Below are positions 1,511 through 64,000 of a stretch of DNA of 64,000 bases, piece by piece. Source of the DNA: Scyliorhinus canicula (taxonomy: Eukaryota); the NCBI RefSeq assembly GCF_902713615.1, contig NC_052164.1, positions 40,225,091 through 40,289,090 of the forward strand, given 5' to 3'. Position 1 is the stretch's first letter, and every line of letters begins with the position of its first letter. Position numbers and translations under genes: made by a program. Below the pieces are notes generated by a model. The model searched no databases, was not told where the DNA came from, and was given only the letters and a program-made list of their open reading frames with translations.

Positions 1511-1749
1511 TTAATATTACACATTTCTAAAGTTATGTTCATTTTTGATTTCTGTCGGTTTGATTTCCACATTACAAATGGTCTGAATTCTCCTATCTGC
1601 TGCCTGTTGCTGTTGCTCATTCTCTGCTCCATTTTCCATTCTCTCCATCCTCTGATTTTCCCTCACCTGGCGGAATTGTAAATTCATTTTGAACTCAACT
1701 TACCCAGGTTCTCATATTTTCTAAACTTCTGCACCTCAACAATATAGTA

Positions 1750-2085
1750 TCATGGAATCCCTACAGTGCAGGAGGAGGCCATTCAACCTATCGGGTCTGT
1801 CCCGAACCTCTGAAAGAGCATCTTAACGAGGTTCACTGCCCTCACCTATCCCTGTATCCCCGTAACCCTACTTAACCTGCACATCTTTGGACATTAAGGG
1901 AAAATTTTAACAGAGCCAATCTACCTAACCTGCATGTTTTTGGACTGTGGGAGGAAACCAGAGGAAACCGAGGCAGACACGGAGAGAACATGCAAACTCC
2001 ACACAGACGGTCACCCAAGGCTGAAATTGAAGCAGTGTCATGTGTGCCGCGATACAGTAACATTAACCACTGTGCCACCATGCCA
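1750..2085 (-). mobile_element. tRNA-derived HE1-like SINE (copies about 25063-25398 and 48527-48862)
   Basis: Minus strand begins GGCATGGTGGCACAGTGGTTAATG (A box), has the TGTGTGGAGTTTGCATGTTCTCTCC core and a CTCCTGCACTGTAGGGATTCCATG tail. Confidence 0.8.
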
Positions 2086-2152
2086 TCCTTTGATGATATT
2101 CTGGCACTGAGGCTGAGAGGACTTGGTATAACATCCAGAATAAGAAAGTGAA

Positions 2153-4979: not shown

Positions 4980-6603
4980 GTCAAATTTGGCACAGATTTC
5001 AGTGAGTGGACCTGAGATTTTTATTTGGTGACGGTGGACATGCTGATTTCTATCCGAGTTCCAGCTGTGAGGGATTGGATGACATTCCCTGTGGAAGCTG
5101 GGATATCCCGAATATCCGGAACCCTTTCCCATTTCCCCCTCAGGCCTTTCAGTGACGAGCCGCTCGCTTCACAAACTCTCCTCCCTCTCGGAAATGACAA
5201 AACGCCCTCACTTTCCCTGAGGCACTTTCGCTTTTGGAACAAACTGACAACAAGGTTCATTTCCAGAGAGAAACTGAGGCGGCCGCTTTCCCGGGAGAGA
5301 GAGAGAGAGAGAGAAGAAAGAAACGGGGTGAAAGGAGAGGGAGCGGAATCACTTTCACCCTCGGAATCGGAGCAGATGAAATATACTTTCAGTCAAACTC
5401 TTGAAAACGGCTCCAGAAAAGATGCGGGAAATGAGCAAGTTGTGCCAGTGAAAGAGCAGATTGTGGTGCAGCTCAATGGGAACGGAGTCAGTGTCCATGG
5501 AGCGGGGAGCCTGGGCTCTGAGCCGGGCTCTCTGCAATGTTCAAGCTGTGAAGTGTGGAGAGGACAAGCGCGATGTGAACACACCGGGTCCCGGTGCTTT
5601 TCAGAGGCAATGGGGCCCCGGGTCAGCTCGAAAAGCCGCCGCACCGGATTCCCTCTCTCGGTGTCTCTATAATCCGGATGATCAAATCCAGCCCCCAATA
5701 CATGTTCCCCCTGCAACCCCACCCCCCCCCCCAATACTAAGCCTCCCTCTACACCACCTTATTGCCCCCCAATACTGAGCCTCCCTCTACACCAACTTAC
5801 TGCCCCCCAATACTGAGCCTCCCTCTACACCACCTTATTGCGCCCCCCAATACTGAGCCTCCCTCTACACCACCTTACTGCCCCCCAATACTGTGACTCC
5901 CTCTACACCACCTTACTGCCCCCCAATACTGTGCCTCCCTCTACACCACCTTACTGCCCCCCAATACTGAGCCTCCCTCTACACCCCCTTACTGCCCCCC
6001 AATACTGAGCCTCCCTCTACACCACCTTATTGCCCCCCAATACTGAGCTTCCCTCTACACCAACTTAATGCACACCAATACTGAGCCTCCCTCTACACCT
6101 TACTGCCCCCCCCCCCCAATACTGAGCCTCCCTCTACACCACCTTTCTGCCCCCAATACTGAGCCTCCCTCTAATCCACCTTACTGCCCCCGGGTGATGT
6201 GAAGCTTCACAACACTGAGCTGGAAGCCAGCGCTGTTTAGGATTTTCTCGCAGGGATTTCCCTCTCGCTGCTTCCGGAGTCTCCAGCTTTCAGCTTCCTG
6301 ACCTCAAAGAGAAGCCGCACAAACTATTGATCTCCTGCAGCTCGAGCACAAATCCTCCAGCCCATTTTCACTTTTCCAATGTCATGTCCACACATTAAAG
6401 GCGACACCAGTGCCAGCTCCCAGCAGAGTCCACACTCACACTCACTCCATTCGGCAACACAGGCGCTCGCTCCCGGATCACAAGCGGCTCCCATTCGACT
6501 TTCTCACTTTCATTCGCTTCACAAGAACCCTTCTCGCCGCTGAACCACGAAGCCGCCGCTTTCTCATCTTTCACATCGGTGTGTGACTCTGGCTCGGTTG
6601 CTC
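4980..6603 (+). promoter_or_regulatory. A-type promoter paralogue in front of the orphan exon 1 (copies about 28310-29897 and 51775-53363)
   Basis: Collinear with 20640-22195. GGGATATCCC 5100-5109, CACTTTCGCTTTT 5223-5235, GGGATTTCCC 6253-6262, TTTTCACTTTTCC 6365-6377, TTAAA 6395-6399. Confidence 0.7.
5733..6191. repeat. C-rich minisatellite, about 38-bp unit AATACTGAGCCTCCCTCTACACCACCTTACTGCCCCCC, 12 copies
   Basis: Units counted directly. Confidence 0.95.
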
Positions 6604-9174: not shown

Positions 9175-9340
9175 GCTTTGAGTTAGAACTGGCCGCTGTT
9201 TGTGTTTTTCTATTTGGGATCTTCCCGGCCCTGGTTGAGGAATTTCCAGCTTTCAGATTCCTTCCCTCACACAGGGAGCAGACTAACTATTCGCCTTCTG
9301 AAGGAAACAGCCGAAAGCAGATTCCACTTTCCCAACGTAA
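9175..9340 (+). promoter_or_regulatory. B-type proximal promoter, a diverged paralogue of the A-type promoter (copies about 32353-32518 and 55819-55984)
   Basis: GGGATCTTCC 9216-9225, GAGGAATTTCCAGCTTTCA 9237-9255 and TTCCACTTTCCC about 9322 occur in the same order as the motifs at 6253-6377. Confidence 0.6.
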
Positions 9341-9630: not shown

Positions 9631-11162
9631 AGACGCGCAGGAGAGTTTAGGCGGCTGCTCCTGCTGCAAGAGGTTGCATTTTCACTCCCGGTGATTCTTT
9701 CGGTGAAAATACATTTGTTCGGAGAGGAACCCGGTTACGGTCAGTGTGTGATCCTCAGCTCCGTGCCTCACTCTGGCTCGGTTGCTCATGGCTCTGGCCA
9801 GTATTTGGAGGTTTGGGACGGTGCTGTTCCTCTTGTCCGGTACCCTCCCGGGACCCTCAGTCTGGGCTGTGAGAGGCTGCAGTTACAGCAAGTTCTCAAC
9901 ACAGAGACACTCAGCAAACTGAATGAAATGGTGAGTTGAAGCTGGAGCCAGAAACAATTCCCCATCGCACTGGGTCCATTTGTTTTGAAACAGTCTCTCA
10001 GGAAAATGGTTTTGGGGTTTGCAGCGCTGCACAGTTTATGGTCAGCGAATCTGCAGCATTACTGTTTCTGATCTGGGTTGACACAGTGTTTGTCTTTGCT
10101 CTCAGGGCGGTCGCTTCCCTCGGCAATGTGTCAGGGAGAGGTTTGCGCTGACAACCAAGCCCTTGAATCTGGTGAAACTGTCTGAGGGTTTGCAGGTGAG
10201 TGAACACTGGGGCTTATTATCATTTATTCCATCAGAAATGTGCGAAAAACACGATAAAGATCAACCACCGTAATCCAGGATGGACAGAGCAGGTCGCTCA
10301 TTGAAGTTGTCAGTGGAAATGAGGGAGCTCCTGCTTTGAACTCAAACCCCCGGGTAAAGACTCTCTTCCTCGTTCCCTCAGACTGATGTAGGGAATGGAA
10401 CCTCATTGAGCTGTGATACACCCTGTTCGGGGAGCCTGCCAAGTCTGCAGCACCATTCAAAGGTTACTTGTGCCTGCTAATCATCTCAATTCCTTTCATC
10501 ACCTCACTACCCATTAGCATCTCTGTCTTCTCCCTCTTACTCCCTCACTGTCTATCCACTTCTTACCATCAATCGTCCTATACAGTTCAGGCAGGGCCCT
10601 TTCATCTGTGGATTCCACACAACATACCTGTCCACTCTCCATTGCATTCATTCGATGGTCACTGTGTTGATATTGGTGGGATGGTCTTTGGCTAGTCCAG
10701 GATGCTGCCACCAGCGCTGGTCCAATTCCTGTCTGACTGAGGAGGTGTGAGACCTGCCTCTGCGCCCTTCCCTGAGAGTCGAAGACAATGACAGACTCCC
10801 TCTACAAATAAACAAAAACAAACTGCCTAGAAAGCAACTCAGGGTGAAGCATCAGATGCCACAGCGTCAGAGGCCCAGGGTGACCGTGAGGAGTTTTCAC
10901 GTTCGCTGCGTGTGCGTGGGATTCCTCCGGGTGCTCTGGTTTCCTCTCACAGTCCAAAGATGTGCAGATGAGGTGGATTGGCCATGATAAATTGTCCGTT
11001 AGTGCCCAAAGGTTTGGTGGGGTTATGGGGATGTGGCAGCGGAGTGGAAGGGGAGCTCCATTATTCTAATACTGTCCAGGGTGGCCTCTCAATTTATGTC
11101 CTCTATAAACTGGAACAGAATCCAATAACTACTGTAATATAACATAACTCAATTATCTCTGG

Positions 11163-20639: not shown

Positions 20640-22195
20640 TTGCAGAGAAATGTGTGAATGAGCATGCGATTTTTATTTGGTGAAGGTGGAAAAGCTGATT
20701 TCAATCCGAGTTCCAGCTGAGAGGGATTGGGTGACATTCCCTGTGGAAGCTGGGATATCCCGAATATCCGGAACCCTTTCCCATTTCCCCCTCAGGCCTC
20801 TCAGTGGCGAGCGGCTCGCTTCACAAACTCTCCTCCCTCTCGGAAATGACAAAACGCCTTCTCTTTCCCTGAGGCACTTTCGCTTTTGGAACAAACTGAC
20901 AACAAGGTTCATTTCCAGAGAGAAAGTGAGGCAGCCGCTTTCCCGGGAGACAGAGAGAGAGACAAGAAAGAAACGGGGTGAAAGGAGAGGGAGCGGAATC
21001 ACTTTCACCCTCGGAATCGGAGCAGATGAAATATTCTTTCAGTCAAACTCTTGAAAACGGCTCCAGAAAGCAGCGGGAAATGAGCAAGTTGTGCCAGTGA
21101 AAGAGCAGATTGTGGGACAGCTCAATGGGAGCGGAGTCAGTGTCCATGAAGCGGGGAGCCTGGGCTCTGAGCCGGGCTCTCTGCAATGTTCAAGCTGTGA
21201 AGGGTGGAGAGAACAAGCGCGATGTGAACACACCGGGTCCCGGTGCATTTCAGAGGCAATGGGGCCCCGGGTCAGCTCGAGAAGCCGCCGCACCGGATTC
21301 CCGCTCTCGGTGTCGCTGTAATCCGGATGATCAAATCCAGCCCCCAATACATGTTCCCCCTGCACCCCCCCCCAGCAATACTGAGCCTCCCTCTACACCA
21401 CCAAACTGCCCCCCCCCCAAAAACTGACCCTCCCTCTGCACCTCCTTACTGCCCCCCAATACTGAGCCACCCTCTACACCACCATACTGCCCCCCGAATA
21501 CTCTGCCCCCCTCTACACCAAATTACTGCCCCCACAATACTGAGTCCTACTCTGCACCACCGTACTGCCCCCCCCCCAATACTGAGCCTCCCTCTACACC
21601 ACCCTACTGCCGCCCCCAAATACAGAGTCCCCCTCTACACCACCTTACTGCCCCACAATACTGAGCCTCCCTCTACACCACCTTACTGCCGCCCCCCAAT
21701 ACTGAGCCTCCCTCTACACCACCTTACTGCCCCCAATATTGACCCTCCCTCTAATCCACCATACTGCCCCCCGGGTGATGAGAAGCTTCACAACACTGAG
21801 CTGGAAGCCAGCGCTGCTTGGGATTTTCTCGCAGGGATTCCCCACTCACTGCTTCCGGAGTCTCCAGCTTTCAGCTTCCTGACCTCAAAGAGAAACCGCA
21901 CAAACTATTGATCTCCTGCAGCTCGAACACAAATCCTCCAGCCCATTTTCACTTTACCAATGTCATGTCCACACCTTAAAGGCGACAGCATGTCAGAGCC
22001 AGTGCCAGCTCCCAACAGAGTCCACACTCACACTCACTCCATTCGCTAACAGAGGCGTTCGCTCCCGGATCAGAATCGGCTCCCATTCGACTTTCCCACT
22101 TTCATTCGCTTCACAAGAACCTTTCTCGCCGCTGAACCACGAAGCCGCCGCTTACTCATCTTTTACATCGGTGTGTGACTCTGGCTCGGTTGCTC
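20640..22195 (+). promoter_or_regulatory. A2 IFN upstream region with NF-kB and IRF/ISRE-like motifs (copy upstream of A3 at about 44100-45658)
   Basis: kB-type GGGATATCCC 20752-20761 and GGGATTCCCC 21834-21843. IRF-type CACTTTCGCTTTT about 20875, GCTTTCAGCTTCC 21867-21879, TTTTCACTTT 21946-21955 and ACTTTCCCACTTTCATT 22090-22106. TATA-like TTAAA 21976-21980. Confidence 0.7.
21377..21772. repeat. Same minisatellite, 10 more degenerate copies
   Basis: Units counted directly. Confidence 0.92.
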
Positions 22196-29054: not shown

Positions 29055-29485
29055 AATACTGAGCCTCCCTCTACACCACCTTATTGCCCCCCCCCAATAA
29101 TAAGCCTCCCTCTACACCACCTAACTGCCCCCCCAACACTGAGCCTCCCTCTACACCACCTTATTGCCCCCCCCCCAATACTAAGCCTCCCTCTACACCA
29201 CCTAACTGCCCCCCCAACACTGAGCCTCCCTCTACACCCCCTTACTGCCCCCCAATACAGAGCCTCCCTCTACACCACCTTACTGCCCCCAATACTGAGC
29301 CTACCTCTACACCACCTTACTGCCCCCCCCCACCAATACTGAGCCTCCCTCTACACCTTACTGCCCCCCCCCAATACTGAGCCTCCCCCTTCACCACCTT
29401 TCTGCCGCAAATACTGAGCCTCCCTCTACACCCCCTTACTGCCCCCCCAATACAGAGCCTCCCTCTCCACCACCTTACTGCCCCC
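29055..29485. repeat. Same minisatellite, 11 copies
   Basis: Units counted directly. Confidence 0.92.
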
Positions 29486-29897
29486 GGGTGATGTGAAGCT
29501 TCACAACACTGAGCTGGAAGCCAGCGCTGTTTAGTATTTTCTCGCAGGGATTTCCCTCTCGCTGCTTCCGGAGTCTCCAGTTTTCAGCTTCCTGACCTCA
29601 GAGAGAAACCGCACAAACTATTGATCTCCTGCAGCTCGAGCACAAATCCTCCAGCCCATTTTCACTTTTCCAATGTCATGTCCACACGTTAAAGGCGACA
29701 CCAGTGCCAGCTCCCAGCAGAGTCCACACTCACACTCACTCCATTCGGCAACACAGGCGCTCGCTCCCGGATCACAAGCGGTTCCCATTCGACTTTCCCA
29801 CTTTCATTCGCTTCACAAGAACCCTTCTCGCCGCTGAACCACGAAGCCGCCGCTTTCTCATCTTTCACATCGGTGTGTGACTCTGGCTCGGTTGCTC

Positions 29898-30029
29898 ATG
29901 GCTCTGGCGAGTATTTGGAGGTTTGGGACGGTGTTGCTCCTCTTGTCCGCGACCCTCAGTCTGGGCTGTGAGAGGCTGCAGTTACAGCAAGTTCTCAACA
30001 CAGAGACACTCAGCAAACTGAATGAAATG
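29898..30029 (+). other. Orphan IFN exon 1 (unit 2), open frame and intact donor; candidate alternative first exon of B2
   Basis: MALASIWRFGTVLLLLSATLSLGCERLQLQQVLNTETLSKLNEM|GTGAGT. No exons 2-4 of its own seen. Confidence 0.8.
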
Positions 30030-31059: not shown

Positions 31060-33005
31060 ACCTGGTGTTGTAAGACGTCTTACTGTGCATCGTGGGACTG
31101 TGAGAGGAAACCGGAGCACCGGGAGGAAACCCAAGCAGACACGGGGAGAACGTGCAGACTCCGCACAATCACCAGAGGCTGGAATTGAACCTGGGTGTGA
31201 GGCAGCAGTGTTAATTACTGTGCCAGGTGCTGCCTCTATGATCTGCTGGTAACTTTAACCTCACTTTTCCTCTCTGTCCAAAGTAGCACAGTGGTGCAAA
31301 GGTCAGCACTGCTGCCTCAGGGCACCGAGGACCCGGGTTCGATACCGGCTCTGGGTCACTGTCTGTGTGGAGTTTGCATATTCTCCCCGTGTCTGCATGG
31401 GTCTCATCTCCACAACCAAAAGATGTGCTGGTTAGTTGGATTGGTCACACTAAATTGCCCCTTAATTGAAAAAAAGTAATTGGTACTCTATAGTTCTAAA
31501 AAAAACTTTTCCTGTCTGTCCCTCTCCCCCGGGACACACTTTTAGATTCCCCTTGAATATCTGCAATGACCGAGGGGATTGCTTTACTGAGGAAGCGAAT
31601 TCTAAAGATTAATGAGCCACTGAGACAAACAAATTCCTCCTTACTTCCATCATAAATGGGGAGTCTTTATTTTTAAACTGTGCACCTTAGTTCTAGAATC
31701 CTCTGGAAGAGGATGCCCTCCTGTCAGCTTGTATCCAGCCAACCCCCCTCAGATTCTGAGACGTTTCAATATTCGAATTAGTTTGATCAGCACACCGGTG
31801 TTTTGAGATGATGTCATTGAGAGGTAGCATGCAGCTGAGAAATGGGAGAGGTCAAGGATTGATTCTTAGGGGACACCAGAGGTAATGCAGCCGTCCTTCA
31901 GCAGGAAGAGAAGCCACTGCAGGAAATTCTCTGCCTACGTTGAGATAGATGATAAAAGCAAACGAGGACAGCCCCCTTCCAGCCCCATCCACCCAGCCTA
32001 AAACTTGACCATTGTGCAGAGGCCTGACCGACCCGTGTCAAGGTGCAGACATGATATGGAGATGCTGGCGTTGGACTGGGCTGAGCACAGTGAAAAGTCT
32101 CAACTGAGGAAGGAGCAGTGCTCCGAAAACTAGTGTTTGAAGCAAACATGTTGGACTTATCCTGGTGTTGTAAGACTTCTTAAGGTGCAGACATATAGAG
32201 AAGGATCTGAAGGGGAGGTTAACCTTTGTTACAGCCAAACCGTTCTAACCAACTGCCCCCTTATTGTGCCCTTGATGTGAATCCGTTCAACTTGAAGGAA
32301 ATCATCTGCTTTTCCAAAATTGATATTAATAATATTGATCCATATTCTTGGAGCTTTGAGTTAGAACCGGCCGCTGTTTGTGTTTTTCTATTTGGGCTCT
32401 TCCCGGCCCTGGTTGAGGAATTTCCAGCTTTCAGATTCCTTCCCTCACACTGGGAGCAGACTAACTATTCGCCTTGTAAAAGAAACAACCGAAAGCAGAT
32501 TTCACTTTCCCAACGTAACACCGCTGATCGCCAGACCCTCCTCTTAACACGGAGAGGATGCTAGAGAGAGATCCTCCCAACACAGNNNNNNNNNNNNNNN
32601 NNNNNNNNNNNNNNNNNNNNNNNNNNNNNNNNNNNNNNNNNNNNNNNNNNNNNNNNNNNNNNNNNNNNNNNNNNNNNNNNNNNNNNNNNNNNNNNNNNNN
32701 NNNNNNNNNNNNNNNNNNNNNNNNNNNNNNNNNNNNNNNNNNNNNNNNNNNNNNNNNNNNNNNNNNNNNNNNNNNNNNNNNNNNNNNNNNNNNNNNNNNN
32801 NNNNNNNNNNNNNNNNNNNNNNNNNNNNNNNNNNNNNNNNNNNNNNNGACTCGCAGGAGAGTTTAGGCGGTTACTCCTGCTGCAAGCGGTTGCATTTTCA
32901 CTCCCGGTGATTCTTTCGGTGAAAATACAACATTTGTCGGAGTTGAACCCGGTTACGGTCAGTGTGTGATCCTCAGCTCCGTGTCTCACTCTGGCTCGGT
33001 TGCTC

Positions 33006-36000
33006 ATGCTCTGGCCAGTATTTGGAGCTTTGTGACGGTGTTGTTCCTCTTGTCCGGGACCCTCAGTCTGGGCTGTGAGAGGCTGCAGTTACAGCAAGTT
33101 CTCAACACAGAGACACTCAGCAAACTGAATGAAATGGTGAGTTGAAGCTGGAGCCAGAAACAATTCCCCATCGGCACTGGGTCCATTTGTTTTGAAGCAT
33201 TCTCTCAGGAAATGGTTCTGGGGTTTGCAGCGCTGCACAGTTTATGGTCAGCGAATCTGCAGCATTACTGTTTCTGATCTGGGTTGACACAGTGTTTGTC
33301 TTGCTCTCAGGCGGGTCGCTTCCCTCGGCAATGTGTCAGGGAGAGGTTTGCGCTGACAACCAAGACCTTGAATCTGGTGAAACTGTCTGAGGGTTTGCAG
33401 GTGAGTGAACACTGGGCTTATTATCATTTATTCCATCAGAAATGTGCGAAAAACACGATAAAGATCAACCACCGTAATCCAGGATGGGACAGAGCAGGTC
33501 GTTCATTGAAGTTGTCAGTGGAAATGAGGAGCTCCTGCTTTGAACCTCAAACCCCCGGGTAAAGACTCTCTTCCTCGTTCCCTCAGACTGATGTAGGGAA
33601 TGGAACCTCATTGAGCTGTGATGCACCCTGTTGGGGAGCCTGCCAAGTCTGCAGCATCATTCAAAGGTTACTTGTGCCTGCTAATCATCTCAATTCCTTC
33701 ATCACCTCACTACCCATTAGCATCTCTGTCTTCTCCCTCTTACTCCCTCACTGTCTATCCACTTCTTACCATCAATCGTCCTATACAGTTCAGGCAGGGC
33801 CCTTTCATCTGTGGATTCCACACACATACCTGTCCACTCTCCATTGCATTCACTCGATGGTCACTGTGTTGATATTGGTGGGCTGGTTAGCTCATTGGCT
33901 AGTCCAGGATGCTGCCACCAGCGCTGGTCCAATTCCTGTCTGACTGAGGAGGTGTGAGACCTGCCTCTGCGCCCTTCCCTGAGAGTCGAAGGACAATGAC
34001 AGACTCCCTCTACAAATAAACAAAAACCAAACTGCCCAGAAAGCAACTCAGGTGAAGCATCAGATTGCCACAGCGGCAGAGGCCCAGGGTGACCGTGTGG
34101 AGTTTTCACGTTCGCTCCGTGTGCGTGGGATTCCTCCGGGTGCCCTGGTTTCCTCTCACAGTCCAAAGATGTGCAGGTGAGGTGGATTGGCCATGATAAA
34201 TTGTCCCTTAGTGCCCAAAGGTTTGGTGGGGTTAGGGGGATGTGGCAGCGGAGTGGAAGGGGAGCTCCATTATTCTAATACTTTCCAGGTGTTCTCATCA
34301 ATTTATGTCCTCTATAAACTGGAACAGAATCCAATAACTACTGTAATATAACATAACTCAATTATCTCTGGTGCAGGCACGGTGGCACAGTGGTTAGCAT
34401 TGCTGCCTCAGTGGTGCCGATGGTCCCAACCTTGATCCCGGCTCTGGGTCATTGTCAGTGTGGAGTTTGCGCATTCTTTCCATGTTTGCGTGGATTTCGC
34501 TCCCACAATCCAAAGATGTGCACGGCAGGTGATTTGCCGTGCTAAATTGCCACTTAATTCGAAAAAATGAATTGAGTACTCTAAATTTATTTTTTTAAAC
34601 TCATCATCTCTAAATATTCCAACAACACAAACTCCCAGTCAGCCATCACCTCTGCATTCTCAGATTAGATTCATTCAGATATCACCAAGTTCACAATTTT
34701 GCAAAATGGATTTTTCCGATATTCCCCGAGGTGCCACCAAAATCTCGAATGGAGAGAGTTATTTCACTCACAGGGTCCGAGGAAGGAGATATTGATGGAT
34801 GGGTCTTGTCAGGAGATTGGTGTCAGTGGAGGGGGTTAAGTCGATGTGCGAGGAGGAGATGGGGCCCATATTGAATGACGAGGTGTGAGGCACTTCGCAG
34901 GGTGAACTCCACATCCACCTGGGCCAGGTTTGGTTTCATCCAGCCTCGGGTAGTTTTGAGGGCCACTTGACCAATTTCAGAATGAGTCACTTCTTTTTAG
35001 GGGGGGGGGGGACGACAGGTTTACAGTGCTGTTTACAGGGTCCGGGTAACAGACGTGCATATGTTCTGGTTTTGTCCCGAGGTCATGGGTTTTGGGGTCT
35101 CCTTCTTTAGCACCATGTTGGCGATCCTGAAGATTGAGCTGGAGCCCTAACCTTAGCGGCCATACTTTGGGTGTCAGACTTATCAGAGCTGCAAACGGGC
35201 GCAGGGGCCAATGGCGTCGCCTTCTCCTTCCTCATTGCTCGGAAGTGAGTTCTGCTGGGATGGAGTTCTCCGCCTCCATCCAGTGCCTCGGTTTGGCTTG
35301 GGGACCTGATTGAGTTCCTATTCCTTGAAAAAGTCAAAGAAAAGTTGAGGGGAGCAACGACGGGATTCTATGGGAGATGAAGCCTTTTACTGTATTTTTC
35401 AAGGAAATTGTCACCTTTTGTTACTCGGGGTGGGGGGGGGGGGGAGTTGACGGGAGGGGAGTGGCAGGTTTCATGAGAGGTTGTTTTATGATTCTGTTTT
35501 CATATCTGTAGATGTGTTGATTTTTCTTGTTATTTTGAATTTCATAAATGAAATATATTAATGAAATATTTATTAAAAAAAACAAAAATGCATCATCTTA
35601 ATCTGATTGTGTATATATTCCCCAGACACAGGACAGGATCCAGATTGTCCATCAGACCCTGCGTCACATCAGCAAGATCTACAGCATGAACTGGGTTCAG
35701 TCACCTGGGACCGGAACAAGGTGGAAAACCCTCCGCCTTCTCCTAGACCGACAGCTCAGTGAGCTGGAAGAATGTGCCAGGAAACAGGGCTCAGAGGCCA
35801 GACTGAGGAAAAACTCCACCATTCAAAAATACTTCAGGAAACTGAGGAAGTTTCTCAAACAGAAGGTGGGACAATTGATAATGACTCTGTGATTAGTTGG
35901 ATTGTAGTTTATTTGACCGTAATTAGATCTGTTCATTTTCCATTGGGTTTTCCTTAAAATATATTCTGTTTTTCCAGACATTCAGCAACTGTGCTTGGGA

Positions 36001-44840: not shown

Positions 44841-45236
44841 AATACTGAGCCTCCCTCTACACCACCAAACTGCCCCCCCCCCAAAAACTGACCCTCCCTC
44901 TGCACCTCCTTACTGCCCCCCAATACTGAGCCACCCTCTACACCACCATACTGCCCCCCGAATACTCTGCCCCCCTCTACACCAAATTACTGCCCCCACA
45001 ATACTGAGTCCTACTCTGCACCACCGTACTGCCCCCCCCCCAATACTGAGCCTCCCTCTACACCACCCTACTGCCGCCCCCAAATACAGAGTCCCCCTCT
45101 ACACCACCTTACTGCCCCACAATACTGAGCCTCCCTCTACACCACCTTACTGCCGCCCCCCAATACTGAGCCTCCCTCTACACCACCTTACTGCCCCCAA
45201 TATTGACCCTCCCTCTAATCCACCATACTGCCCCCC
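44841..45236. repeat. Same minisatellite, 10 copies
   Basis: Same variant order as 21377-21772. Confidence 0.92.
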
Positions 45237-45658
45237 GGGTGATGAGAAGCTTCACAACACTGAGCTGGAAGCCAGCGCTGCTTGGGATTTTCTCGCAGGG
45301 ATTCCCCACTCACTGCTTCCGGAGTCTCCAGCTTTCAGCTTCCTGACCTCAAAGAGAACCGCACAAACTATTGATCTCCTGCAGCTCGAACACAAATCCT
45401 CCAGCCCATTTTCACTTTACCAATGTCATGTCCACACCTTAAAGGCGACAGCATGTCAGAGCCAGTGCCAGCTCCCAACAGAGTCCACACTCACACTCAC
45501 TCCATTCGCTAACAGAGGCGTTCGCTCCCGGATCAGAATCGGCTCCCATTCGACTTTCCCACTTTCATTCGCTTCACAAGAACCTTTCTCGCCGCTGAAC
45601 CACGAAGCCGCCGCTTACTCATCTTTTACATCGGTGTGTGACTCTGGCTCGGTTGCTC

Positions 45659-52520: not shown

Positions 52521-52951
52521 AATACTGAGCCTCCCTCTACACCACCTTATTGCCCCCCCCCAATAATAAGCCTCCCTCTACACCACCTAACTGCCCCCCC
52601 AACACTGAGCCTCCCTCTACACCACCTTATTGCCCCCCCCCCAATACTAAGCCTCCCTCTACACCACCTAACTGCCCTCCCAACACTGAGCCTCCCTCTA
52701 CACCCCCTTACTGCCCCCCAATACAGAGCCTCCCTCTACACCACCTTACTGCCCCCAATACTGAGCCTACCTCTACACCACCTTACTGCCCCCCCCCACC
52801 AATACTGAGCCTCCCTCTACACCTTACTGCCCCCCCCCAATACTGAGCCTCCCCCTTCACCACCTTTCTGCCGCAAATACTGAGCCTCCCTCTACACCCC
52901 CTTACTGCCCCCCCAATACAGAGCCTCCCTCTCCACCACCTTACTGCCCCC
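52521..52951. repeat. Same minisatellite, 11 copies
   Basis: Same variant order as 29055-29485. Confidence 0.92.
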
Positions 52952-53363
52952 GGGTGATGTGAAGCTTCACAACACTGAGCTGGAAGCCAGCGCTGTTTAG
53001 TATTTTCTCGCAGGGATTTCCCTCTCGCTGCTTCCGGAGTCTCCAGTTTTCAGCTTCCTGACCTCAGAGAGAAACCGCACAAACTATTGATCTCCTGCAG
53101 CTCGAGCACAAATCCTCCAGCCCATTTTCACTTTTCCAATGTCATGTCCACACGTTAAAGGCGACACCAGTGCCAGCTCCCAGCAGAGTCCACACTCACA
53201 CTCACTCCATTCGGCAACACAGGCGCTCGCTCCCGGATCACAAGCGGTTCCCATTCGACTTTCCCACTTTCATTCGCTTCACAAGAACCCTTCTCGCCGC
53301 TGAACCACGAAGCCGCCGCTTTCTCATCTTTCACATCGGTGTGTGACTCTGGCTCGGTTGCTC

Positions 53364-53495: not shown

Positions 53496-56472
53496 GTGAG
53501 TTGAACCTACAGCCAGAGCCGGAGTCGAATCAAACAGCGTCTGTATGTTTTACAAAGTCATATCAGGAGAGGAAGAGAAATGTGTGAAAAAACACATCAG
53601 GTCTGAGCGGTGAATAGAAGCTGGACACTGAGGCGAGGAGGATTTACAGAAAGGAGGGATTGTTATCTGGGGGCGGGGGTGAAAGAGGATTCAGAAACAA
53701 GCCATTCACATCAAGAATCTGTGTTTAATGTAACCAAACAATCACAGTGTTATCAGGAACACAGTAAAGTAAATTTGACATCAAGTTACGTAAGAAGGTA
53801 AAAGAACAGATGGCTAAAAGCTGGTAAAAGAGGGAACTTTTCAGGAAGGTCTTGCCGTAGGAAGGGGAGGTGGAGAAATGCGGAAGTTTACGGAGGGAAT
53901 TCCTAATTTTAACGCTGAGATAGCTGAAGACTGCGCCTCAAAAATGAACATTGGAATCCAGGAGGCCAGATCTGGAGGTGGACAGATATGTCAGAGTGTT
54001 TTCGAGACTGGAGATGATTACACACACAACAGAAGACTTAAAAACAAGTAGGAGAATTTAAAGATGAAGGCATTGCTTAACTCGGCGTCATAAATCAGCA
54101 AATTCAGGTACGATGAGAGAACAAGATTCATGATTTATGCCAAATCCATCTCAGACATAAATTACTACAGGTTTTGATTGGGGAGAATGTGGAAAGTCGA
54201 TCAGGCAGGTGTAGGAGTGACCAAACGCGGAGGTAACAAAGCTATGGATGGAAATTTCAGCTTCAGAGTTGCTCAGCCAGAGAGGGGGACAAGTGTGATT
54301 GGGGGGGGGGGGGGGGGGGGAGTGGGCAGTCTTACTTGTGGCGTCGATGTGGTCAGAAACTAATTTCAGGGTCAAATATCACACCTGCACATCTTGGGAC
54401 TGTGATGTGGAGATTTCGGCGTTGGACTGGGGTGAGCACAGTAAGAAGTCTTACAACACCAGGTTAAAGTCCAACAGGTTTGTTTCAAACACGAGCTTTC
54501 GGAGCGCAGCTCCTTCTTCAGGTGACCTGGTGTTGTAAGACGTCTTACTGTGCATCTTGGGACTGTGAGAGGAAACCGGAGCACCGGGAGGAAACCCAAG
54601 CAGACACGGGGAGAACGTGCAGACTCCGCACAATCACCAGAGGCTGGAATTGAACCTGGGTGTGAGGCAGCAGTGTTAATTACTGTGCCAGGTGCTGCCT
54701 CTATGATCTGCTGGTAACTTTCACCTCACTTTTCCTCTCTGTCCAAAGTAGCACAGTGGTGCAAAGGTCAGCACTGCTGCCTCAGGGCACCGAGGACCCG
54801 GGTTCGATACCGGCTCTGGGTCACTGTCTGTGTGGAGTTTGCATATTCTCCCCGTGTCTGCATGGGTCTCATCTCCACAACCAAAAGATGTGCTGGTTAG
54901 TTGGATTGGTCACACTAAATTGCCCCTTAATTGAAAAAAAGTAATTGGTACTCTATAGTTCTAAAAAAAACTTTTCCTGTCTGTCCCTCTCCCCCGGGAC
55001 ACACTTTTAGATTCCCCTTGAATATCTGCAATGACCGAGGGGATTGCTTTACTGAGGAAGCGAATTCTAAAGATTAATGAGCCACTGAGACAAACAAATT
55101 CCTCCTTACTTCCATCATAAATGGGGAGTCTTTATTTTTAAACTGTGCACCTTAGTTCTAGAATCCTCTGGAAGAGGATGCCCTCCTGTCAGCTTGTATC
55201 CAGCCAACCCCCCTCAGATTCTGAGACGTTTCAATATTCGAATTAGTTTGATCAGCACACCGGTGTTTTGAGATGATGTCATTGAGAGGTAGCATGCAGC
55301 TGAGAAATGGGAGAGGTCAAGGATTGATTCTTAGGGGACACCAGAGGTAATGCAGCCGTCCTTCAGCAGGAAGAGAAGCCACTGCAGGAAATTCTCTGCC
55401 TACGTTGAGATAGATGATAAAAGCAAACGAGGACAGCCCCCTTCCAGCCCCATCCACCCAGCCTAAAACTTGACCATTGTGCAGAGGCCTGACCGACCCG
55501 TGTCAAGGTGCAGACATGATATGGAGATGCTGGCGTTGGACTGGGCTGAGCACAGTGAAAAGTCTCAACTGAGGAAGGAGCAGTGCTCCGAAAACTAGTG
55601 TTTGAAGCAAACATGTTGGACTTTATCCTGGTGTTGTAAGACTTCTTAAGGTGCAGACATATAGAGAAGGATCTGAAGGGGAGGTTAACCTTTGTTACAG
55701 CCAAACCGTTCTAACCAACTGCCCCCTTATTGTGCCCTTGATGTGAATCCGTTCAACTTGAAGGAAATCATCTGCTTTTCCAAAATTGATATTAATAATA
55801 TTGATCCATATTCTTGGAGCTTTGAGTTAGAACCGGCCGCTGTTTGTGTTTTTCTATTTGGGCTCTTCCCGGCCCTGGTTGAGGAATTTCCAGCTTTCAG
55901 ATTCCTTCCCTCACACTGGGAGCAGACTAACTATTCGCCTTGTAAAAGAAACAACCGAAAGCAGATTTCACTTTCCCAACGTAACACCGCTGATCGCCAG
56001 ACCCTCCTCTTAACACGGAGAGGATGCTAGAGAGAGATCCTCCCAACACAGNNNNNNNNNNNNNNNNNNNNNNNNNNNNNNNNNNNNNNNNNNNNNNNNN
56101 NNNNNNNNNNNNNNNNNNNNNNNNNNNNNNNNNNNNNNNNNNNNNNNNNNNNNNNNNNNNNNNNNNNNNNNNNNNNNNNNNNNNNNNNNNNNNNNNNNNN
56201 NNNNNNNNNNNNNNNNNNNNNNNNNNNNNNNNNNNNNNNNNNNNNNNNNNNNNNNNNNNNNNNNNNNNNNNNNNNNNNNNNNNNNNNNNNNNNNNNNNNN
56301 NNNNNNNNNNNNNGACTCGCAGGAGAGTTTAGGCGGTTACTCCTGCTGCAAGCGGTTGCATTTTCACTCCCGGTGATTCTTTCGGTGAAAATACAACATT
56401 TGTTCGGAGTTGAACCCGGTTACGGTCAGTGTGTGATCCTCAGCTCCGTGTCTCACTCTGGCTCGGTTGCTC

Positions 56473-59400
56473 ATGGCTCTGGCCAGTATTTGGAGCTTTG
56501 TGACGGTGTTGTTCCTCTTGTCCGGGACCCTCAGTCTGGGCTGTGAGAGGCTGCAGTTACAGCAAGTTCTCAACACAGAGACACTCAGCAAACTGAATGA
56601 AATGGTGAGTTGAAGCTGGAGCCAGAAACAATTCCCCATCGCACTGGGTCCATTTGTTTTGAAGCATTCTCTCAGGAAAATGGTTCTGGGGTTTGCAGCG
56701 CTGCACAGTTTATGGTCAGCGAATCTGCAGCATTACTGTTTCTGATCTGGGTTGACACAGTGTTTGTCTTTGCTCTCAGGGCGGTCGCTTCCCTCGGCAA
56801 TGTGTCAGGGAGAGGTTTGCGCTGACAACCAAGACCTTGAATCTGGTGAAACTGTCTGAGGGTTTGCAGGTGAGTGAACACTGGGGCTTATTATCATTTA
56901 TTCCATCAGAAATGTGCGAAAAACACGATAAAGATCAACCACCGTAATCCAGGATGGACAGAGCAGGTCGTTCATTGAAGTTGTCAGTGGAAATGAGGGA
57001 GCTCCTGCTTTGAACTCAAACCCCCGGGTAAAGACTCTCTTCCTCGTTCCCTCAGACTGATGTAGGGAATGGAACCTCATTGAGCTGTGATGCACCCTGT
57101 TGGGGGAGCCTGCCAAGTCTGCAGCATCATTCAAAGGTTACTTGTGCCTGCTAATCATCTCAATTCCTTTCATCACCTCACTACCCATTAGCATCTCTGT
57201 CTTCTCCCTCTTACTCCCTCACTGTCTATCCACTTCTTACCATCAATCGTCCTATACAGTTCAGGCAGGGCCCTTTCATCTGTGGATTCCACACAACATA
57301 CCTGTCCACTCTCCATTGCATTCACTCGATGGTCACTGTGTTGATATTGGTGGGCTGGTTAGCTCATTGGCTAGTCCAGGATGCTGCCACCAGCGCTGGT
57401 CCAATTCCTGTCTGACTGAGGAGGTGTGAGACCTGCCTCTGCGCCCTTCCCTGAGAGTCGAAGACAATGACAGACTCCCTCTACAAATAAACAAAAACAA
57501 ACTGCCCAGAAAGCAACTCAGGGTGAAGCATCAGATGCCACAGCGGCAGAGGCCCAGGGTGACCGTGTGGAGTTTTCACGTTCGCTCCGTGTGCGTGGGA
57601 TTCCTCCGGGTGCCCTGGTTTCCTCTCACAGTCCAAAGATGTGCAGGTGAGGTGGATTGGCCATGATAAATTGTCCCTTAGTGCCCAAAGGTTTGGTGGG
57701 GTTAGGGGGATGTGGCAGCGGAGTGGAAGGGGAGCTCCATTATTCTAATACTGTCCAGGGTGTTCTCTCAATTTATGTCCTCTATAAACTGGAACAGAAT
57801 CCAATAACTACTGTAATATAACATAACTCAATTATCTCTGGTGCAGCACGGTGGCACAGTGGTTAGCATTGCTGCCTCAGGGTGCCGAGGTCCCAACCTT
57901 GATCCCGGCTCTGGGTCATTGTCAGTGTGGAGTTTGCGCATTCTTTCCATGTTTGCGTGGATTTCGCTCCCACAATCCAAAGATGTGCACGGCAGGTGAT
58001 TTGCCGTGCTAAATTGCCACTTAATTCGAAAAAATGAATTGAGTACTCTAAATTTATTTTTTTTAAACTCATCATCTCTAAATATTCCAACAACACAAAC
58101 TCCCAGTCAGCCATCACCTCTGCATTCTCAGATTAGATTCATTCAGATATCACCAAGTTCACAATTTTGCAAAATGGATTTTTCCGATATTCCCCGAGGT
58201 GCCACCAAAATCTCGAATGGAGAGAGTTATTTCACTCACAGGGTCCGAGGAAGGAGATATTGATGGATGGGTCTTGTCAGGAGATTTGGTGTCAGTGGAG
58301 GGGGTTAAGTCGATGTGCGAGGAGGAGATGGGGCCCATATTGAATGACGAGGTGTGAGGCACTTCGCAGGGTGAACTCCACATCCACCTGGGCCAGGTTT
58401 GGTTTCATCCAGCCTCGGGTAGTTTTGAGGGCACACTTGACCAATTTCAGAATGAGTCACTTCTTTTTAAGGGGGGGGGGGGACGACAGGTTTACAGTGC
58501 TGTTTACATGGTCCGGGTAACAACGTGCATATGTTCTGGTTTTGTCCCGAGGTCATGGGTTTTGGGGTCTCCTTCTTTAGCACCATGTTGGCGATCCTGA
58601 AGATTGAGCTGGAGCCCTAACCTTTAGCGGCCATACTTTGGGTGTCAGACTTATCAGAGCTGCAAACGGGCGCAGGGGCCAATGGCGTCGCCTTCTCCTT
58701 CCTCATTGCTCGGAAGTGAGTTCTGCTGGGATGGAGTTCTCCGCCTCCATCCAGTGCCTCGGTTTGGCTTGGGGACCTGATTGAGTTCCTATTCCTTGAA
58801 AAAGTCAAAGAAAAGTTGAGGGGAGCAAACGACGGGATTCTATGGGAGATGAAGCCTTTTACTGTATTTTTCAAGGAAATTGTCACCTTTTGTTACTCGG
58901 GGTGGGGGGGGGGGGAGTTGACGGGAGGGGAGTGGCAGGTTTCATGAGAGGTTGTTTTATGATTCTGTTTTTCATATCTGTAGATGTGTTGATTTTTCTT
59001 GTTATTTTGAATTTCATAAATGAAATATATTAATGAAAATATTTATTAAAAAAACAAAAATGCATCATCTTTAATCTGATTGTGTATATATTCCCCAGAC
59101 ACAGGACAGGATCCAGATTGTCCATCAGACCCTGCGTCACATCAGCAAGATCTACAGCATGAACCTGGGTTCAGTCACCTGGGACCGGAACAAGGTGGAA
59201 AACCTCCGCCTTCTCCTAGACCGACAGCTCAGTGAGCTGGAAGAATGTGCCAGGAAACAGGGCTCAGAGGCCAGACTGAGGAAAAACTCCACCATTCAAA
59301 AATACTTCAGGAAACTGAGGAAGTTTCTCAAACAGAAGGTGGGACAATTGATAATTGACTCTGTGATTATTGGATTGTAGTTTATTTGACCGTAATTAGA

Positions 59401-59549
59401 TCTGTTCATTTTCCAATTGGGTTTCCTTAAAATATATTCTGTTTTTCCAGACATTCAGCAACTGTGCTTGGGAAATAATCCGCGCTGAGACCAGGGCCCG
59501 TTTACAACAGCTCCTTTACTTAATGGCACAAGTCCGCAGAAGAAATTGA
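56473..59549 (+). CDS. Type I interferon B3, intact 4-exon gene, 186 aa
   Basis: Exons 56473-56604, 56780-56869, 59099-59338, 59451-59549. MALASIWSFVTVLFLLSGTLSLG/CERLQ...GGRFPRQC...LEECARKQ...TFSNCAWEIIRAETRARLQQLLYLMAQVRRRN*. Confidence 0.93.
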
Positions 59550-62500
59550 AATAAAATCCAACCGCATGTTCAGCAGAGACTGGAATAATTTATTTAAATT
59601 GACTGTTATTTATAGAATAACAGAATTCTGTGGTGACTGACAAAGAGCAAAGAATATCTTGATGTAATTTTCTATTTGATTATTTATTCTAATTTATTAA
59701 TATTTATCGCTGCAATATTTTTATGTTGTGAAATCTTCATCATATGTGTGCTAAGCTAAATGGATGGCCATGATGTCTTTGTACAACAGATGTTAGATTT
59801 TTACGGTTGTGAACTCACAAATGTAAAGAAGGTATTTCGATAACACATTTCATACAGACTGAAACAAGAAATAGTTCTTTCAAAGCTTGACGTTTTTGAG
59901 AAGTATTATATTTTATGTCTACAGTACGTCTGGAATTACAATTCTGACAGCTTGGCTCGATGATAACACTGATTGGTGGGTCAAACCCCACTTAATTCTC
60001 ACTGGGCTCCTTATTGTAGCTGCTGAACCTCCAATCACAATTCTGCACTGGGAATGGTCCAGCCAATCCTCAGCTCTGCTTTCCCGGTTTCCTCAGTCTC
60101 AAGGGTCGGTTGCAGACAAACGACCCCTGACCTCATTCCTGTTTCAGACTCACCTTTACTTTCTGTTCACCACAAGGTCAACATTTCAATTAATTCCTCC
60201 TCATTTTAATTTATTGATATTTATCATTGTGTTGGCTTTATGTCATGGATTGCTTATGTTTTGTACAATTTATGAAAAATAAATGTTAATTTATTGATTT
60301 TTATTAAATTTTGGGAAATAAATAATATTTTTTTATAAACCTGGCAACTTTTTATACTGAATGAAAGCATATTTGTTCAAATAAATTGTTTTTGATATCA
60401 CGCATTTGCTGGAGTAATATTTATTTTTCATGGGTCTTCTCAGGGTTTCCTCAGTCTCAAGGGTGTGTTGCAGACAACCGACCCCTGACCCCATTCCTGT
60501 TTCAGATTCACCTTTACTTTCTGTTCACCACAAGGTCAACATTTCAATTAATTCCTCCTTTTCATAGAATTTACAGGGCAGAAGGAGGCCATTCAGCCCA
60601 TTGAGTCTGCACCGGCTCTTGGAAAGAGCACCCTACCCAAGGTCAACAATGCCACCCTATCCCCATAACCCAGTAACCCCACCCAACACTAAGGGCAATT
60701 TTTGGACACTAAGGACAATTTATCATGGCCAATCCACCTAACCTGTACATCTTTGGACTGTGGGAGGAACCCGAAGCACCCGGCGGAAACCCACGCACAC
60801 ACGGGGAGGATGTGCAGACTCCGCACAGACAGTGACCCAAGCCGGAATCGAACCTGGGACACTGGAGCGGTGAAGCGATGGTGCTATCCACAATCCTCAT
60901 TTTCATTTATTGATATTTATCATTGTGTTGGCTTTGTGTCATGGATTGCTAAAGTTTTGTACAATTTATGAGAAATAAATGTTAATTTATTGATTTTTAT
61001 TAAATTTTGGGAAATAAATAATATTTTTTTATAAACCTGGCAACGTTTTATACTGAATGAAAGCATATTTGTTCAAATAAATTGTTTTTGATATCACGCA
61101 CTTACTGGAGTAATATTTATTTTTCATGGGTCTTCTTCACTATAAATGTGTTATAATTGAACAAGTTAGCATTAGGATGGAAAAGGTATTAATGATTTTA
61201 GTGCACTGAAGAGTGGTGATTATCTGCTTTCACAGCTATCAAAGGAAGGAGAGGGTCTTGGAGTAGGTGAATATTGACTAGGATGGGCACACGGTGTGGA
61301 TATATCAGAACATTAGGATTGAGCTGGCGCAGAGCTGTGAGGACTTCAACAAGGTGAAGGTGATGCAATTTGCCATGGTTTACCTGGTGTGATTGTGGGT
61401 CACAATGGACTCGAAAGATTATTTTTTCAACATGCTGGAGCTGGCAGAGGCCTTCACCAGAGAGAAGAAGCTGGGACTGGTCTGAGGAGCATGATTTGGG
61501 ATTCTGCGTTTGAAGGTGGATGATTTTACAGTGTATTTATGCCTCATTTTAGTATATTTCTTTCTCTTGGGGTTTGGGCTGTAAGAACGTGGGATTGACA
61601 CATTTCTTGGCTCAGAGACAAGCTTGCTAATAATGTTGGGTTTTGGGTTTTGGGAGTGCGTCAGAAGGGAGTGGGTGGTTGTTGCTTTTAGGGAAGTAAT
61701 GCAGGGTGACGCTGGGAGGGGGTCACCTTGCTAGCGGAAGGAGACGGTGTGGCTAGTGAATGAGAGAGGAGTGGAGGAAGAGGCTGTTGGGCTAGATCAT
61801 GTGAGGCACAATCAGTCGAGCTGTTTTACTGTTTGTTTGGTAGGGGCATGGGGCCCGGTATGGTGTTCCTACAAGAAACTCACCTGTGAGTGCCGGACCA
61901 TCCAGGTTGGGGAAGCCCTGGGTGAGCCAGGTTTTCCACTCAGGGTTTGACGGATGGGTCGGGGGGGGAGTGGATTTCGGTCAGCAAAATGATTCGCTTT
62001 CAGTCGGGGACTCTGGCTGATCAGGGGATGGTTATGTGATGGTTACAGGTATGCTGGGGGGGGGGGGGGGGTCGCCATGGGCTGGTTTAGATCACTCGGC
62101 TAAATCGCTGGCTTTTAAAGCAGACCAAGCAGGCCAGCAGCACTGTTCGATTCCCATACCAGCCTCCCCGGACAGGCGCTGGAATGTGGCGACTAGGGGC
62201 TTTTCACAGTAACTTCATTGAAGCCTACTCGTGCCAATAAGTGATTTTCATTTCATTCCATGGTGTGAGTGAATGTGTATGCCCCAAATTGGAGCAATGT
62301 CAAGTCTATGGGGTGCTTGCTGGCTGCAATACCGGAGATGGACACCCACCAATTGATTTTAGGGGCGAGATTTTAATTTCGTCTTAGATCCGAAGCTGGA
62401 CTGTTCCCGATTGAGGTCACTAACCCAATCAGGAATTACAAGGGTGTTGGCTGCATTCATGGAGGAGACAACAGACAAACCCTTAGCATGGTTTAGTGAC

Positions 62501-64000
62501 TTGATTGAGCTTTAGTATCTCAAGAAGTTCAAGTTTACAGTGAGGGGGTTGTTAAATGGGTTCCACCGTAGATGACGACTCTTCATATAGTTCTTTAAGG
62601 AATGGGTCACTGCTGGCTGTTAGTGAGGTTAGGGGTGTGTGTTATTTGGGTTATATTTCTGTTACTGGGGTTATTGTTATAGAAAGGATGTGATTGCAGT
62701 AGAAAGAGTGCAGAGGAGATTCACCAGCATGTTGCATGGACAGGAGTTATGAAGCGAAGCTGGCCAGGCTGGGGTTAGTTTCCTTCGAGCAGAGAAGGCT
62801 GAGTGGAACCTGATTGAGCTGTGTAAAATTATGTGGGACATAGACAGGACAAATAGGAAGAAACGTTCCAAAATATTATTGAAAGTAGTGGTTTATTTCT
62901 TCTCTCTCTTGCGCCTCTGCTCGCTGAACTTGGATTCAAACCATCTGGGCCCACTGCATTTTCTACTTCTAGACACATGCAAAATGTAATCCTTCACTTC
63001 CTCTATTCCATTGTTTCTCACTTCAGCCTTTCATTTGGTCGTTCCATTCTACAACTCGATGGCTCATCTTTCACTTTGCTCTGCAAAGCACTGAGCTATG
63101 AGTCTGATTGTTGCCGTTTGATCACATTCGAGTATAATTTGTCTTCATTCATCTAAAAATGGTGCTAGTATTTTAGAGGATTATGTTTTACTTATTATTA
63201 TCAAATATCCCCTGTCTTTGTCCTCATTCAATTAATAAATTACCTTTGTTTTACATACAAGATGGAGAGACTTCAAAACTTTTTCTAAAGAATTTTTCTC
63301 CATATTCAAAATGTTTTTTTGGAATTATAGAGTAAGTAATCCTGTCTTGGATTCAGAGGGTGGAGGGTTCAAATGCACTTGAGAGTCATGGTTCAGACAT
63401 GACCCCTGGCTCTGAATTATGGGTTGTCATCCAACCACACATTTGTGCCCAATGATCAAGATTCTCAGCTCCCCATTGTATTATCTGGACGATTGCATAA
63501 AATCTCACTGATTTACAGGATCCTTTCAAATGTGCCTCTCAACTCAGATAAAGATGGTCATGGCCAAGAAAATAATGTACAAGTATGAATGGTTAATTTG
63601 CTTGTGACTCCTTCCTTTACTCCGCAGTGGGAGAATATGAGGTTTTGTGTCAACTAGATTAATGTCAGGTTGTCCTTCTGTTTTTTAAAATAAATTTAGA
63701 GCACACAATTCATTTTTCCAATTGAGGGGCAATTTTGCGTGGCCAATCCACCTACCCTGCACATCTTTTGGGTTGTGGGTGAAACCCACGCAAACACGGG
63801 GAGAATGTGCAAACACCACACGGACAGTGACCCAGAGCTGGGACCATGGTGGCGTGCGCCCGCAGTACTAACCACTGCGCCACCATGCTATGCTATCCAT
63901 CTGTTTTTTTAATTAATAATCTTTATTGTCACAAGTAGGCTTACATTAATATTGCAATCAAGTCGCTGTGCAGATCCCCTCGTCTCCACTTACCGGCGCC

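Follow-up and report, generated by a model that had tools for sequence, protein, structure and literature searches.

A putative bipartite, inverted NF-kB/IRF/bZIP promoter of type I interferon genes in the catshark and other elasmobranchs

The DNA considered here, referred to as the window, is a stretch of 64,000 nucleotides from the catshark Scyliorhinus canicula (contig NC_052164.1, positions 40,225,091 to 40,289,090 of the forward strand), which carries a tandem array of type I interferon genes. Upstream of one of these genes, B3, lies a 19-mer, GAGGAATTTCCAGCTTTCA (55881-55899), that a sequence-only reading had likened, in inverted orientation, to the junction between positive regulatory domains (PRD) I and II of the human IFNB enhancer. 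Our analysis suggests that this 19-mer probably forms the core of the upstream one of the two halves of a pathogen-inducible promoter of elasmobranch type I interferon genes. Judging from its layout, the promoter is best read as a bipartite inverted virus-response promoter, with sites for NF-kB, interferon regulatory factors (IRF) and basic leucine zipper (bZIP) factors, and not as a contiguous enhanceosome. That IRF and NF-kB sites are present in interferon promoters is textbook knowledge. For fish, IRF3-dependent activation of an interferon promoter was established in salmonid cells (PMC10425769). In the mechanism that we propose, viral sensing would bring Rel/NF-kB dimers to the kB site and IRF3/7-type dimers to the site adjacent to it; the tight overlap would put both factors on one short stretch, where, jointly with a proximal IRF/bZIP block, they would turn the gene on. 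The resemblance to human IFNB would then come from the same binding grammar, and not from a contiguous enhanceosome that has been preserved.

The IFN-beta enhanceosome is the textbook case of a rigid regulatory grammar, and cartilaginous fish are the oldest living lineage with interferons. The promoter described here can be aligned across sharks, skates and sawfish, and both human junctions recur in it with the same spacing in base pairs, split from each other and inverted. This amounts to a natural experiment: the pattern is the one expected if the spacing within a junction matters for joint occupancy by NF-kB and IRF, and the distance and orientation of the two halves do not. It also makes the choice between inheritance and convergence, as well as the induction of interferon in cartilaginous fish, testable by reporter assays and a wider survey of promoters. 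The interferons of cartilaginous fish were catalogued by Redmond et al. 2019 (PMC6640115), with no promoter analysis, and our literature searches for studies of elasmobranch interferon promoters found none.

The 19-mer and its match to the human IFNB enhancer

The units of the array repeat about every 23.4 kb and are 97-100% identical to one another; each contains a gene named A, an orphan exon 1 whose promoter is A-like (named O) and, 3.1 kb downstream of O, a B gene. As the sequence-only reading had it, GAGGAATTTCCAGCTTTCA occurs exactly, on the plus strand, at 9237-9255, 32415-32433 and 55881-55899, i.e. in the promoters of B1, B2 and B3, and the gene downstream does encode a type I interferon according to its Pfam Interferon match. 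No further match with two mismatches or fewer was found in the whole window, and none is expected in shuffled sequence. Since the three copies all come from one tandem duplication, they have to be counted as a single observation. The B3 gene is on the plus strand and the resemblance to the human junction is on the minus strand, where the reverse complement, TGAAAGCTGGAAATTCCTC, is identical at 17 of 19 positions; the copies in the B1 and B2 promoters read in the same way. The human sequence given in the sequence-only reading proved correct, as TGAAAGTGGGAAATTCCTC is contained in the published IFNB enhancer (PMC4743414). The 17/19 figure and the orientation opposite to the gene were likewise borne out, and so was the IRF-to-kB spacing, the distance between GAAAG and the kB core being that of the human junction. 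The 19-mer is 592 bp upstream of the B3 ATG (56473), of which 262 bases are a masked run of N, and about 120 bp upstream of a TATA-like TTAACA.

To obtain a null model, all 39 19-mers of the 57-nt human enhancer were slid over both strands of one 23.4 kb unit, with 100 dinucleotide-preserving shuffles as background. At 17/19 or better there were three matches, located in the B and O promoters, versus none in the 100 shuffles. At 16/19 or better the unit gave 15 matches versus 0.56 expected, and 14 of the 15 fell inside its three interferon promoters, all on the minus strand. However, the catshark B lineage owes part of its 17/19 identity to accident, because the T that gives the B-type kB core GGAAATTCC, identical to the human one, is replaced by C in every other species and paralogue; by this comparison the T is a derived change. 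At the level of the consensus, identity to human PRDI/PRDII is about 14-16/19. Near matches to the motif are in excess genome-wide.

Anatomy and conservation of the promoter

In the upstream block, the kB site AGGAATTTCC occupies 55882-55891, with its 9-mer core GGAATTTCC at 55883-55891. It has no mismatch to HGGARNYYCC, the RelA/c-Rel form, and one to GGGRNWYYCC; one copy in the array, with GGGAATTTCC, fits the latter without mismatch. Adjoining the kB site is an imperfect tandem IRF-like site (55894-55905, minus strand; reverse complement GGAATCTGAAAG), which reads GAAT-CT-GAAA and has one mismatch to GAAANNGAAA, the core of the interferon-stimulated response element (ISRE), whereas human PRDI has two by the same measure. 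The whole B block on the minus strand, GGAAT-CT-GAAAG-CT-GGAAATTCC-T, thus has the 5-2-5-2-9 spacing of human PRDI-PRDII, GAGAA-GT-GAAAG-TG-GGAAATTCC. The B and A/O promoters are homologous. In the A3 promoter the corresponding block is GGAGTCTCCAGCTTTCAGCTTCC (45321-45343, minus strand), and the same block is found at 6276, 21857, 29570 and 53036; the A/O form, GGAAG-CT-GAAAG-CT-GGAGACTCC, is an exact fit to HGGARNYYCC, and a canonical kB site, GGGATT(T/C)CCC, is present 23 bp upstream of each A/O block. The B3 promoter has in the distal position a remnant of a kB site, GGGCTCTTCC (55860-55869), which is GGGATTTTCC or GGGATTTCCC in other sharks and in A/O promoters. A turnover between a distal and a proximal kB site now seems less likely than at first sight: the distal B sequence, GGGATCTTCC, is shared with the zebra shark and departs from the consensus by one or two bases, which is not a loss.

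The second block of the B promoter, 61 bp downstream of the first, is TTTCACTTTCCCAACGTAAC. It consists of an IRF element in inverted orientation with a bZIP-like half-site attached to it. The IRF element (55966-55977, minus strand; reverse complement GGGAAAGTGAAA) resembles PRDI and PRDIII, and its TTCACTTT is invariant in all species. The half-site AACGTAAC (55978-55985, minus strand; reverse complement GTTACGTT) is homologous to TGACAT in the A/O promoters, zebra shark and sawfish, and to TGACGT in the promoters of a second interferon subfamily, named C-type, which adjoins the array on the chromosome. In A/O promoters the block reads ATGACATTGG(A/T)AAAGTGAAA on the minus strand, about 20 bp upstream of a TTAAAGG box, and is identical at 17-18 of 20 positions to human PRDIV/PRDIII, where ATF-2/c-Jun and IRF bind. 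The O3 copy (53125-53145, minus strand; reverse complement ATGACATTGGAAAAGTGAAA) reaches 18/20, and the others are at 6365, 21946, 29659 and 45409-45429; by type, identity to this junction is 18/20 for O, 17/20 for A and the zebra shark, 16/20 for the sawfish and 14/20 for B. The forward sequence GAAACAACCGAAAGC (55948-55962, plus strand) has GAAA motifs at non-canonical spacing and is poorly conserved. Next comes the TATA-like TTAACA (56010-56015, plus strand), whose counterpart in A/O promoters and other species is TTAAAG; transcription is predicted to start some 25-30 bp downstream of it. A masked run of N (56052-56313), with AG/CA simple repeat on its flanks, lies between the promoter and exon 1. 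Along the gene the order is therefore kB, IRF, gap, IRF, bZIP and TATA, with both blocks read opposite to the gene strand, which is the mirror image of human IFNB.

Three further points concern the same promoters. Some 110 bp before the A/O ATG there is a second inverted match to PRDI/PRDII, TGAAAGTGGGAAAGTCGAA (15-16/19), at 45552-45572 and 53257-53277 and also at 6497, 22089 and 29791; as the TATA-like box precedes it, it probably belongs to the 5' untranslated region. A minus-strand splice donor, GAG/GTAAGG, beside the block was rejected as a candidate feature, as it is missing in catshark and zebra shark. The C-type catshark promoters combine a forward IRF element, TGACGT resembling a cAMP response element and a kB-like GGAATATCC beside the TATA box, i.e. 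the same components in a different layout.

Whether the block is kept in other elasmobranchs was a point on which the sequence-only reading had staked its interpretation, and it is. Homologous promoters were compared from whale shark (Rhincodon), zebra shark (Stegostoma), sharpnose sevengill shark (Heptranchias), thorny skate (Amblyraja) and smalltooth sawfish (Pristis). All can be aligned with the catshark promoters, and the block is at the same place in every one of them, as it is in all 25 catshark promoters (8 of B type and 17 of A/O type, in an array that extends over about 210 kb of the chromosome). The elements common to the species are a distal kB site, the block made of kB, CTTTC and ATTCC, a TTCACTTTT block with a TGACAT-like half-site and, in most, a TTAAAG box. 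Mean pairwise column identity rises from 0.44 for the promoter to 0.77 in the flagged 19-mer and 0.84 in 55887-55906, a stretch that contains the best-conserved 19-nt window of the promoter and is the top phylogenetic footprint across the six genera; the IRF/bZIP block comes second. The gap between the two blocks varies between species, from 27 to 70 bp.

The way in which the block varies is informative. The overall pattern in the five genera is a kB site abutting GGAAT-NN-GAAAG on the other strand, with exceptions in the GAAA of sevengill and whale shark, and the register GAAAG-NN-kB is the same in catshark A/O, zebra shark, skate and sawfish. The kB site is GGGAATCTCC, AGGAATCTCC or GGGACTCTCC in other genera, and these, CGGAGTCTCC and AGGAATTTCC differ only at the degenerate R, N, W or Y positions. 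Among the 12 kB variants seen in the 25 catshark promoters and the five genera, 11 fit GGGRNWYYCC or HGGARNYYCC exactly, the zebra shark being the exception; GAAANNGAAA is likewise kept within one mismatch in 11 of 12 variants, with the sevengill shark as the exception. In the skate the junction is GTGAAAGTGGGA, whose 12 bases are identical to human. From this distribution we infer that the module was already present in the ancestor of sharks and rays. Candidate binding factors are encoded in the catshark genome, with matches above cut-off to the Rel-homology domain (PF00554) at two loci and to the IRF domain (PF00605) at at least six. Outside elasmobranchs, a profile protein search reached one teleost and one mammal, and no chimaera; the promoter of the single teleost sampled, an IFN a3-like gene of the Conger eel, has no alignable cassette.

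Known promoters, alternative readings and origin

The closest known system is the IFNB1 enhanceosome of human and mouse, with PRDIV-PRDIII-PRDI-PRDII in this order at -102 to -47. The kB core GGAAATTCC is shared with catshark B, two IRF half-sites and a kB site follow each other at 5-2-5-2-9 with the same GAAAG-NN-kB spacing, and a TGACAT bZIP half-site abuts an IRF element with the spacing of PRDIV/PRDIII. However, the four domains of the enhanceosome are contiguous within about 55 bp, whereas the shark halves are 27-70 bp apart; the shark module is inverted with respect to the gene, so that the kB site is distal and the bZIP site is beside the TATA-like box; it would lie about 120-150 bp from the predicted start, compared with -55 to -102 for the enhanceosome; and an AT-rich kB centre, as used by HMGA1, is found in catshark B only. 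The idea of a composite element with enhanceosome geometry can thus be upheld for the PRDI-PRDII half and has to be given up for the whole, the IRF and bZIP half being at a variable distance: because contiguity and orientation, both of them defining, differ, the label of enhanceosome fits the junctions but not the ensemble.

Other comparisons are more distant. For Atlantic salmon, Bergan et al. in 2006 are said to have described a promoter in two regions: a proximal one, where a TATA box is accompanied by IRF motifs and a putative NF-kB motif, and a distal one, where IRF motifs occur with an ATF-2/c-Jun-like element. The CXCL8 (IL-8) kB site is presumably GGAATTTCC, the same 9-mer as the catshark B core and of RelA/c-Rel type; we know of no IRF site that abuts it, and the gene context differs. 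Teleost type I interferon genes, such as IFNa1 of Atlantic salmon, resemble those of the catshark in having introns, and their promoters are responsive to IRF3/7 and MAVS (PMC10425769), but elasmobranch promoters align with each other and not with that of the Conger IFN a3-like gene.

Several observations weigh against our interpretation. In catshark B itself, the IRF part of the block departs from the consensus, with ATCTGAAA in place of AANNGAAA, the TATA-like box is degenerate and some 300 bp of simple-repeat and masked sequence part the promoter from exon 1. In the whale shark GAAA is one nucleotide further from the kB site, the sequence being AATCGAAA, shifted by 1 nt, and in the sevengill shark the G of GAAA is lost, giving TAAAAG. 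Conservation, moreover, is a sign of constraint and not of the identity of the binding factors. In read mapping to 55700-59900 with four public runs, there was no coverage over the promoter, the 5' untranslated region or the motif. Finally, the B promoter may be weakened, because exon 1 is frame-broken in B1 and B2 and the NCBI model of B2 uses the orphan exon 1 located upstream.

This last point is central to an alternative that we regard as rather unlikely, namely that the block was functional ancestrally and is now a relic in catshark B, the proximal promoter being crippled and transcription of B beginning at the orphan exon 1 with its A-like promoter, 3.1 kb upstream. TTAAAG would have decayed to TTAACA, and the simple-repeat and masked stretch behind the promoter would be an insertion. 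In B1 (9788-9930) exon 1 is frameshifted or duplicated, in B2 (33005-33015) it has a 1-bp deletion immediately past the ATG, and the NCBI protein model P0002 consists exactly of O2 exon 1 (29898-30029) and B2 exons 2-4. But P0002 may reflect a gene model built on homology and not a transcript that was observed, and exon 1 is open in B3 and in five other B copies. Furthermore, the block is invariant in the eight B-type promoters, which differ by up to 16% elsewhere, and the B kB core has shifted towards, not away from, a strong kB sequence.

Another possibility is deep homology. The two blocks would be the inherited PRDI-PRDII and PRDIV-PRDIII halves of an ancestral jawed-vertebrate interferon enhancer, and the mammalian IFN-beta enhanceosome would be the same module, inverted and with its spacer lost. 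In its favour, there are two distinct junctions with identities to human of 17/19 and 18/20, both on the minus strand and arranged relative to each other as they are in the human enhancer; the skate junction adds its 12 identical bases, and the module dates back to the shark-ray split or earlier. Moreover, intron-containing orthologues of the intronless IFN1 genes of tetrapods have been reported from cartilaginous fish (Redmond et al. 2019, PMC6640115). But tetrapod IFN1 is thought to have been retroposed, in which case the promoter would not have been carried along (PMC6640115), and the variable spacer and the inversion argue against simple inheritance. The best catshark match hinges on the derived C-to-T change, and identity at the level of the consensus is near the extreme of the null. 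All in all, we consider deep homology unlikely. The specific scenario that the halves of the enhanceosome, bZIP with IRF and IRF with kB at today's spacing, pre-existed as separate inverted blocks in the jawed-vertebrate ancestor, survive in elasmobranchs and were fused later seems improbable to us. Convergence, or the parallel retention of a junction under constraint, seems to us the better explanation: most of the matched bases are those that the consensus motifs for kB, IRF and bZIP prescribe, it takes a derived base to reach the best match, the orientation of the module is inverted and the cassette is missing from the one bony-fish promoter compared (Conger). The two colinear junction matches and the age of the module nevertheless leave room for inheritance.

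A further alternative bears on the IRF part of the block rather than on its origin. ETS, TEAD and NFAT-type factors have GGAA or GGAAT cores, and it is conceivable, if quite unlikely, that the kB site functions alone, the neighbouring CTTTC...ATTCC being bound by one of these or tuning kB affinity, so that there would be no IRF/NF-kB composite. The IRF core AANNGAAA is in fact absent not only from catshark B but also from skate and sawfish, which all carry AT-NN-GAAA. Whereas the G of GAAA is lost in the sevengill shark and shifted in the whale shark, GGAAT does not vary between species once the catshark A/O type is set aside. The skate has CATTCC, an M-CAT/TEAD core, and the B-type TGGAAA is the core of NFAT5 (PMC7062515). 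On the other hand, CATTCC is restricted to the skate and TGGAAA to catshark B, for which reason NFAT5 binding was rejected as a conserved function. In 11 of the 12 variants GAAT-NN-GAAA departs from the ISRE core at no more than one position, better than human PRDI, and where the O type has changed GAAAGC to GAAAAC, GAAA was kept. As to a chance resemblance without regulatory meaning, the three copies do represent one duplication and the 4.2 Gb genome has five unrelated loci beyond the array where a 17-mer matches exactly, two of them inside a shared repeat, but the absence of any match of 17/19 or better in 100 shuffles and the position of the site in the top footprint across six genera make this very improbable.

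The array, its genes and their transcripts

The gene downstream of the flagged 19-mer, B3 (56473-59549, plus strand), is intact and encodes 186 amino acids in four exons (56473-56604, 56780-56869, 59099-59338 and 59451-59549). The product matches Pfam Interferon (PF00143) with an E-value of 1.3e-28 and has an interferon alpha/beta domain, a signal peptide and a CAWE motif; the proteins closest to it are annotated shark interferons (90-92% identity), the nearest being from Scyliorhinus. With three introns, the coding region has one fewer than the IFN1 genes of fish and amphibians, which have four (PMC6640115). In B2, exon 3 has a local double frameshift (MNWVQSPGTGTRWKT).

B-type genes are transcribed: a 403-nt RNA contig from the public run X1 has B exons 2, 3 and 4 joined at the predicted sites, with 99% identity. 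Run X3 provided unspliced contigs with about 95% identity. In the mapping of the four runs mentioned above, part of B3 intron 2 (57533-58096) had a very high depth in all of them, RNA included; this segment is a high-copy interspersed repeat, probably similar to a short interspersed element.

A transcript was also found for the skate. A cDNA (Logan contig, SRR13269326), compared with the Amblyraja locus 1193-5332, starts 808 bp upstream of the interferon ATG, and its upstream exon is spliced straight to exon 2, so that exon 1 is skipped. Since it begins with a SMART template-switch oligo, this end is cap-proximal. As read from the cDNA, the product would have no signal peptide. It recalls the intracellular interferon isoforms described in trout.

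Other features of the array lie outside the conserved blocks. A variable tandem repeat of about 39 bp (CCTCCCTCTACACCACCTTACTGCCCCCCAATACTGAG) is present directly upstream of every A/O promoter, at 52564-52960, 44859-45255, 5804-6200, 21396-21800 and 29098-29500. Farther along the chromosome, at C19:40301117-40302496, an orphan exon 1 is followed only about 830 bp on by the next exon 1, with no B-type promoter between them. This arrangement looks like a deletion that has fused O and B parts, and such a deletion would explain a double-length gap in the spacing of the motif along the array. Lastly, about 3 kb downstream of B3, on the minus strand, there is a cluster of IRF/ETS-like motifs at 62960-63090 (AAAGTGAAAG, AAATGAAAGGCTGAAGTGAGAAAC and GAGGAAGTGAAGG), one stretch of which is identical to human PRDIII-I at 16 of 19 positions; the cluster may represent a distal enhancer or belong to a repeat.

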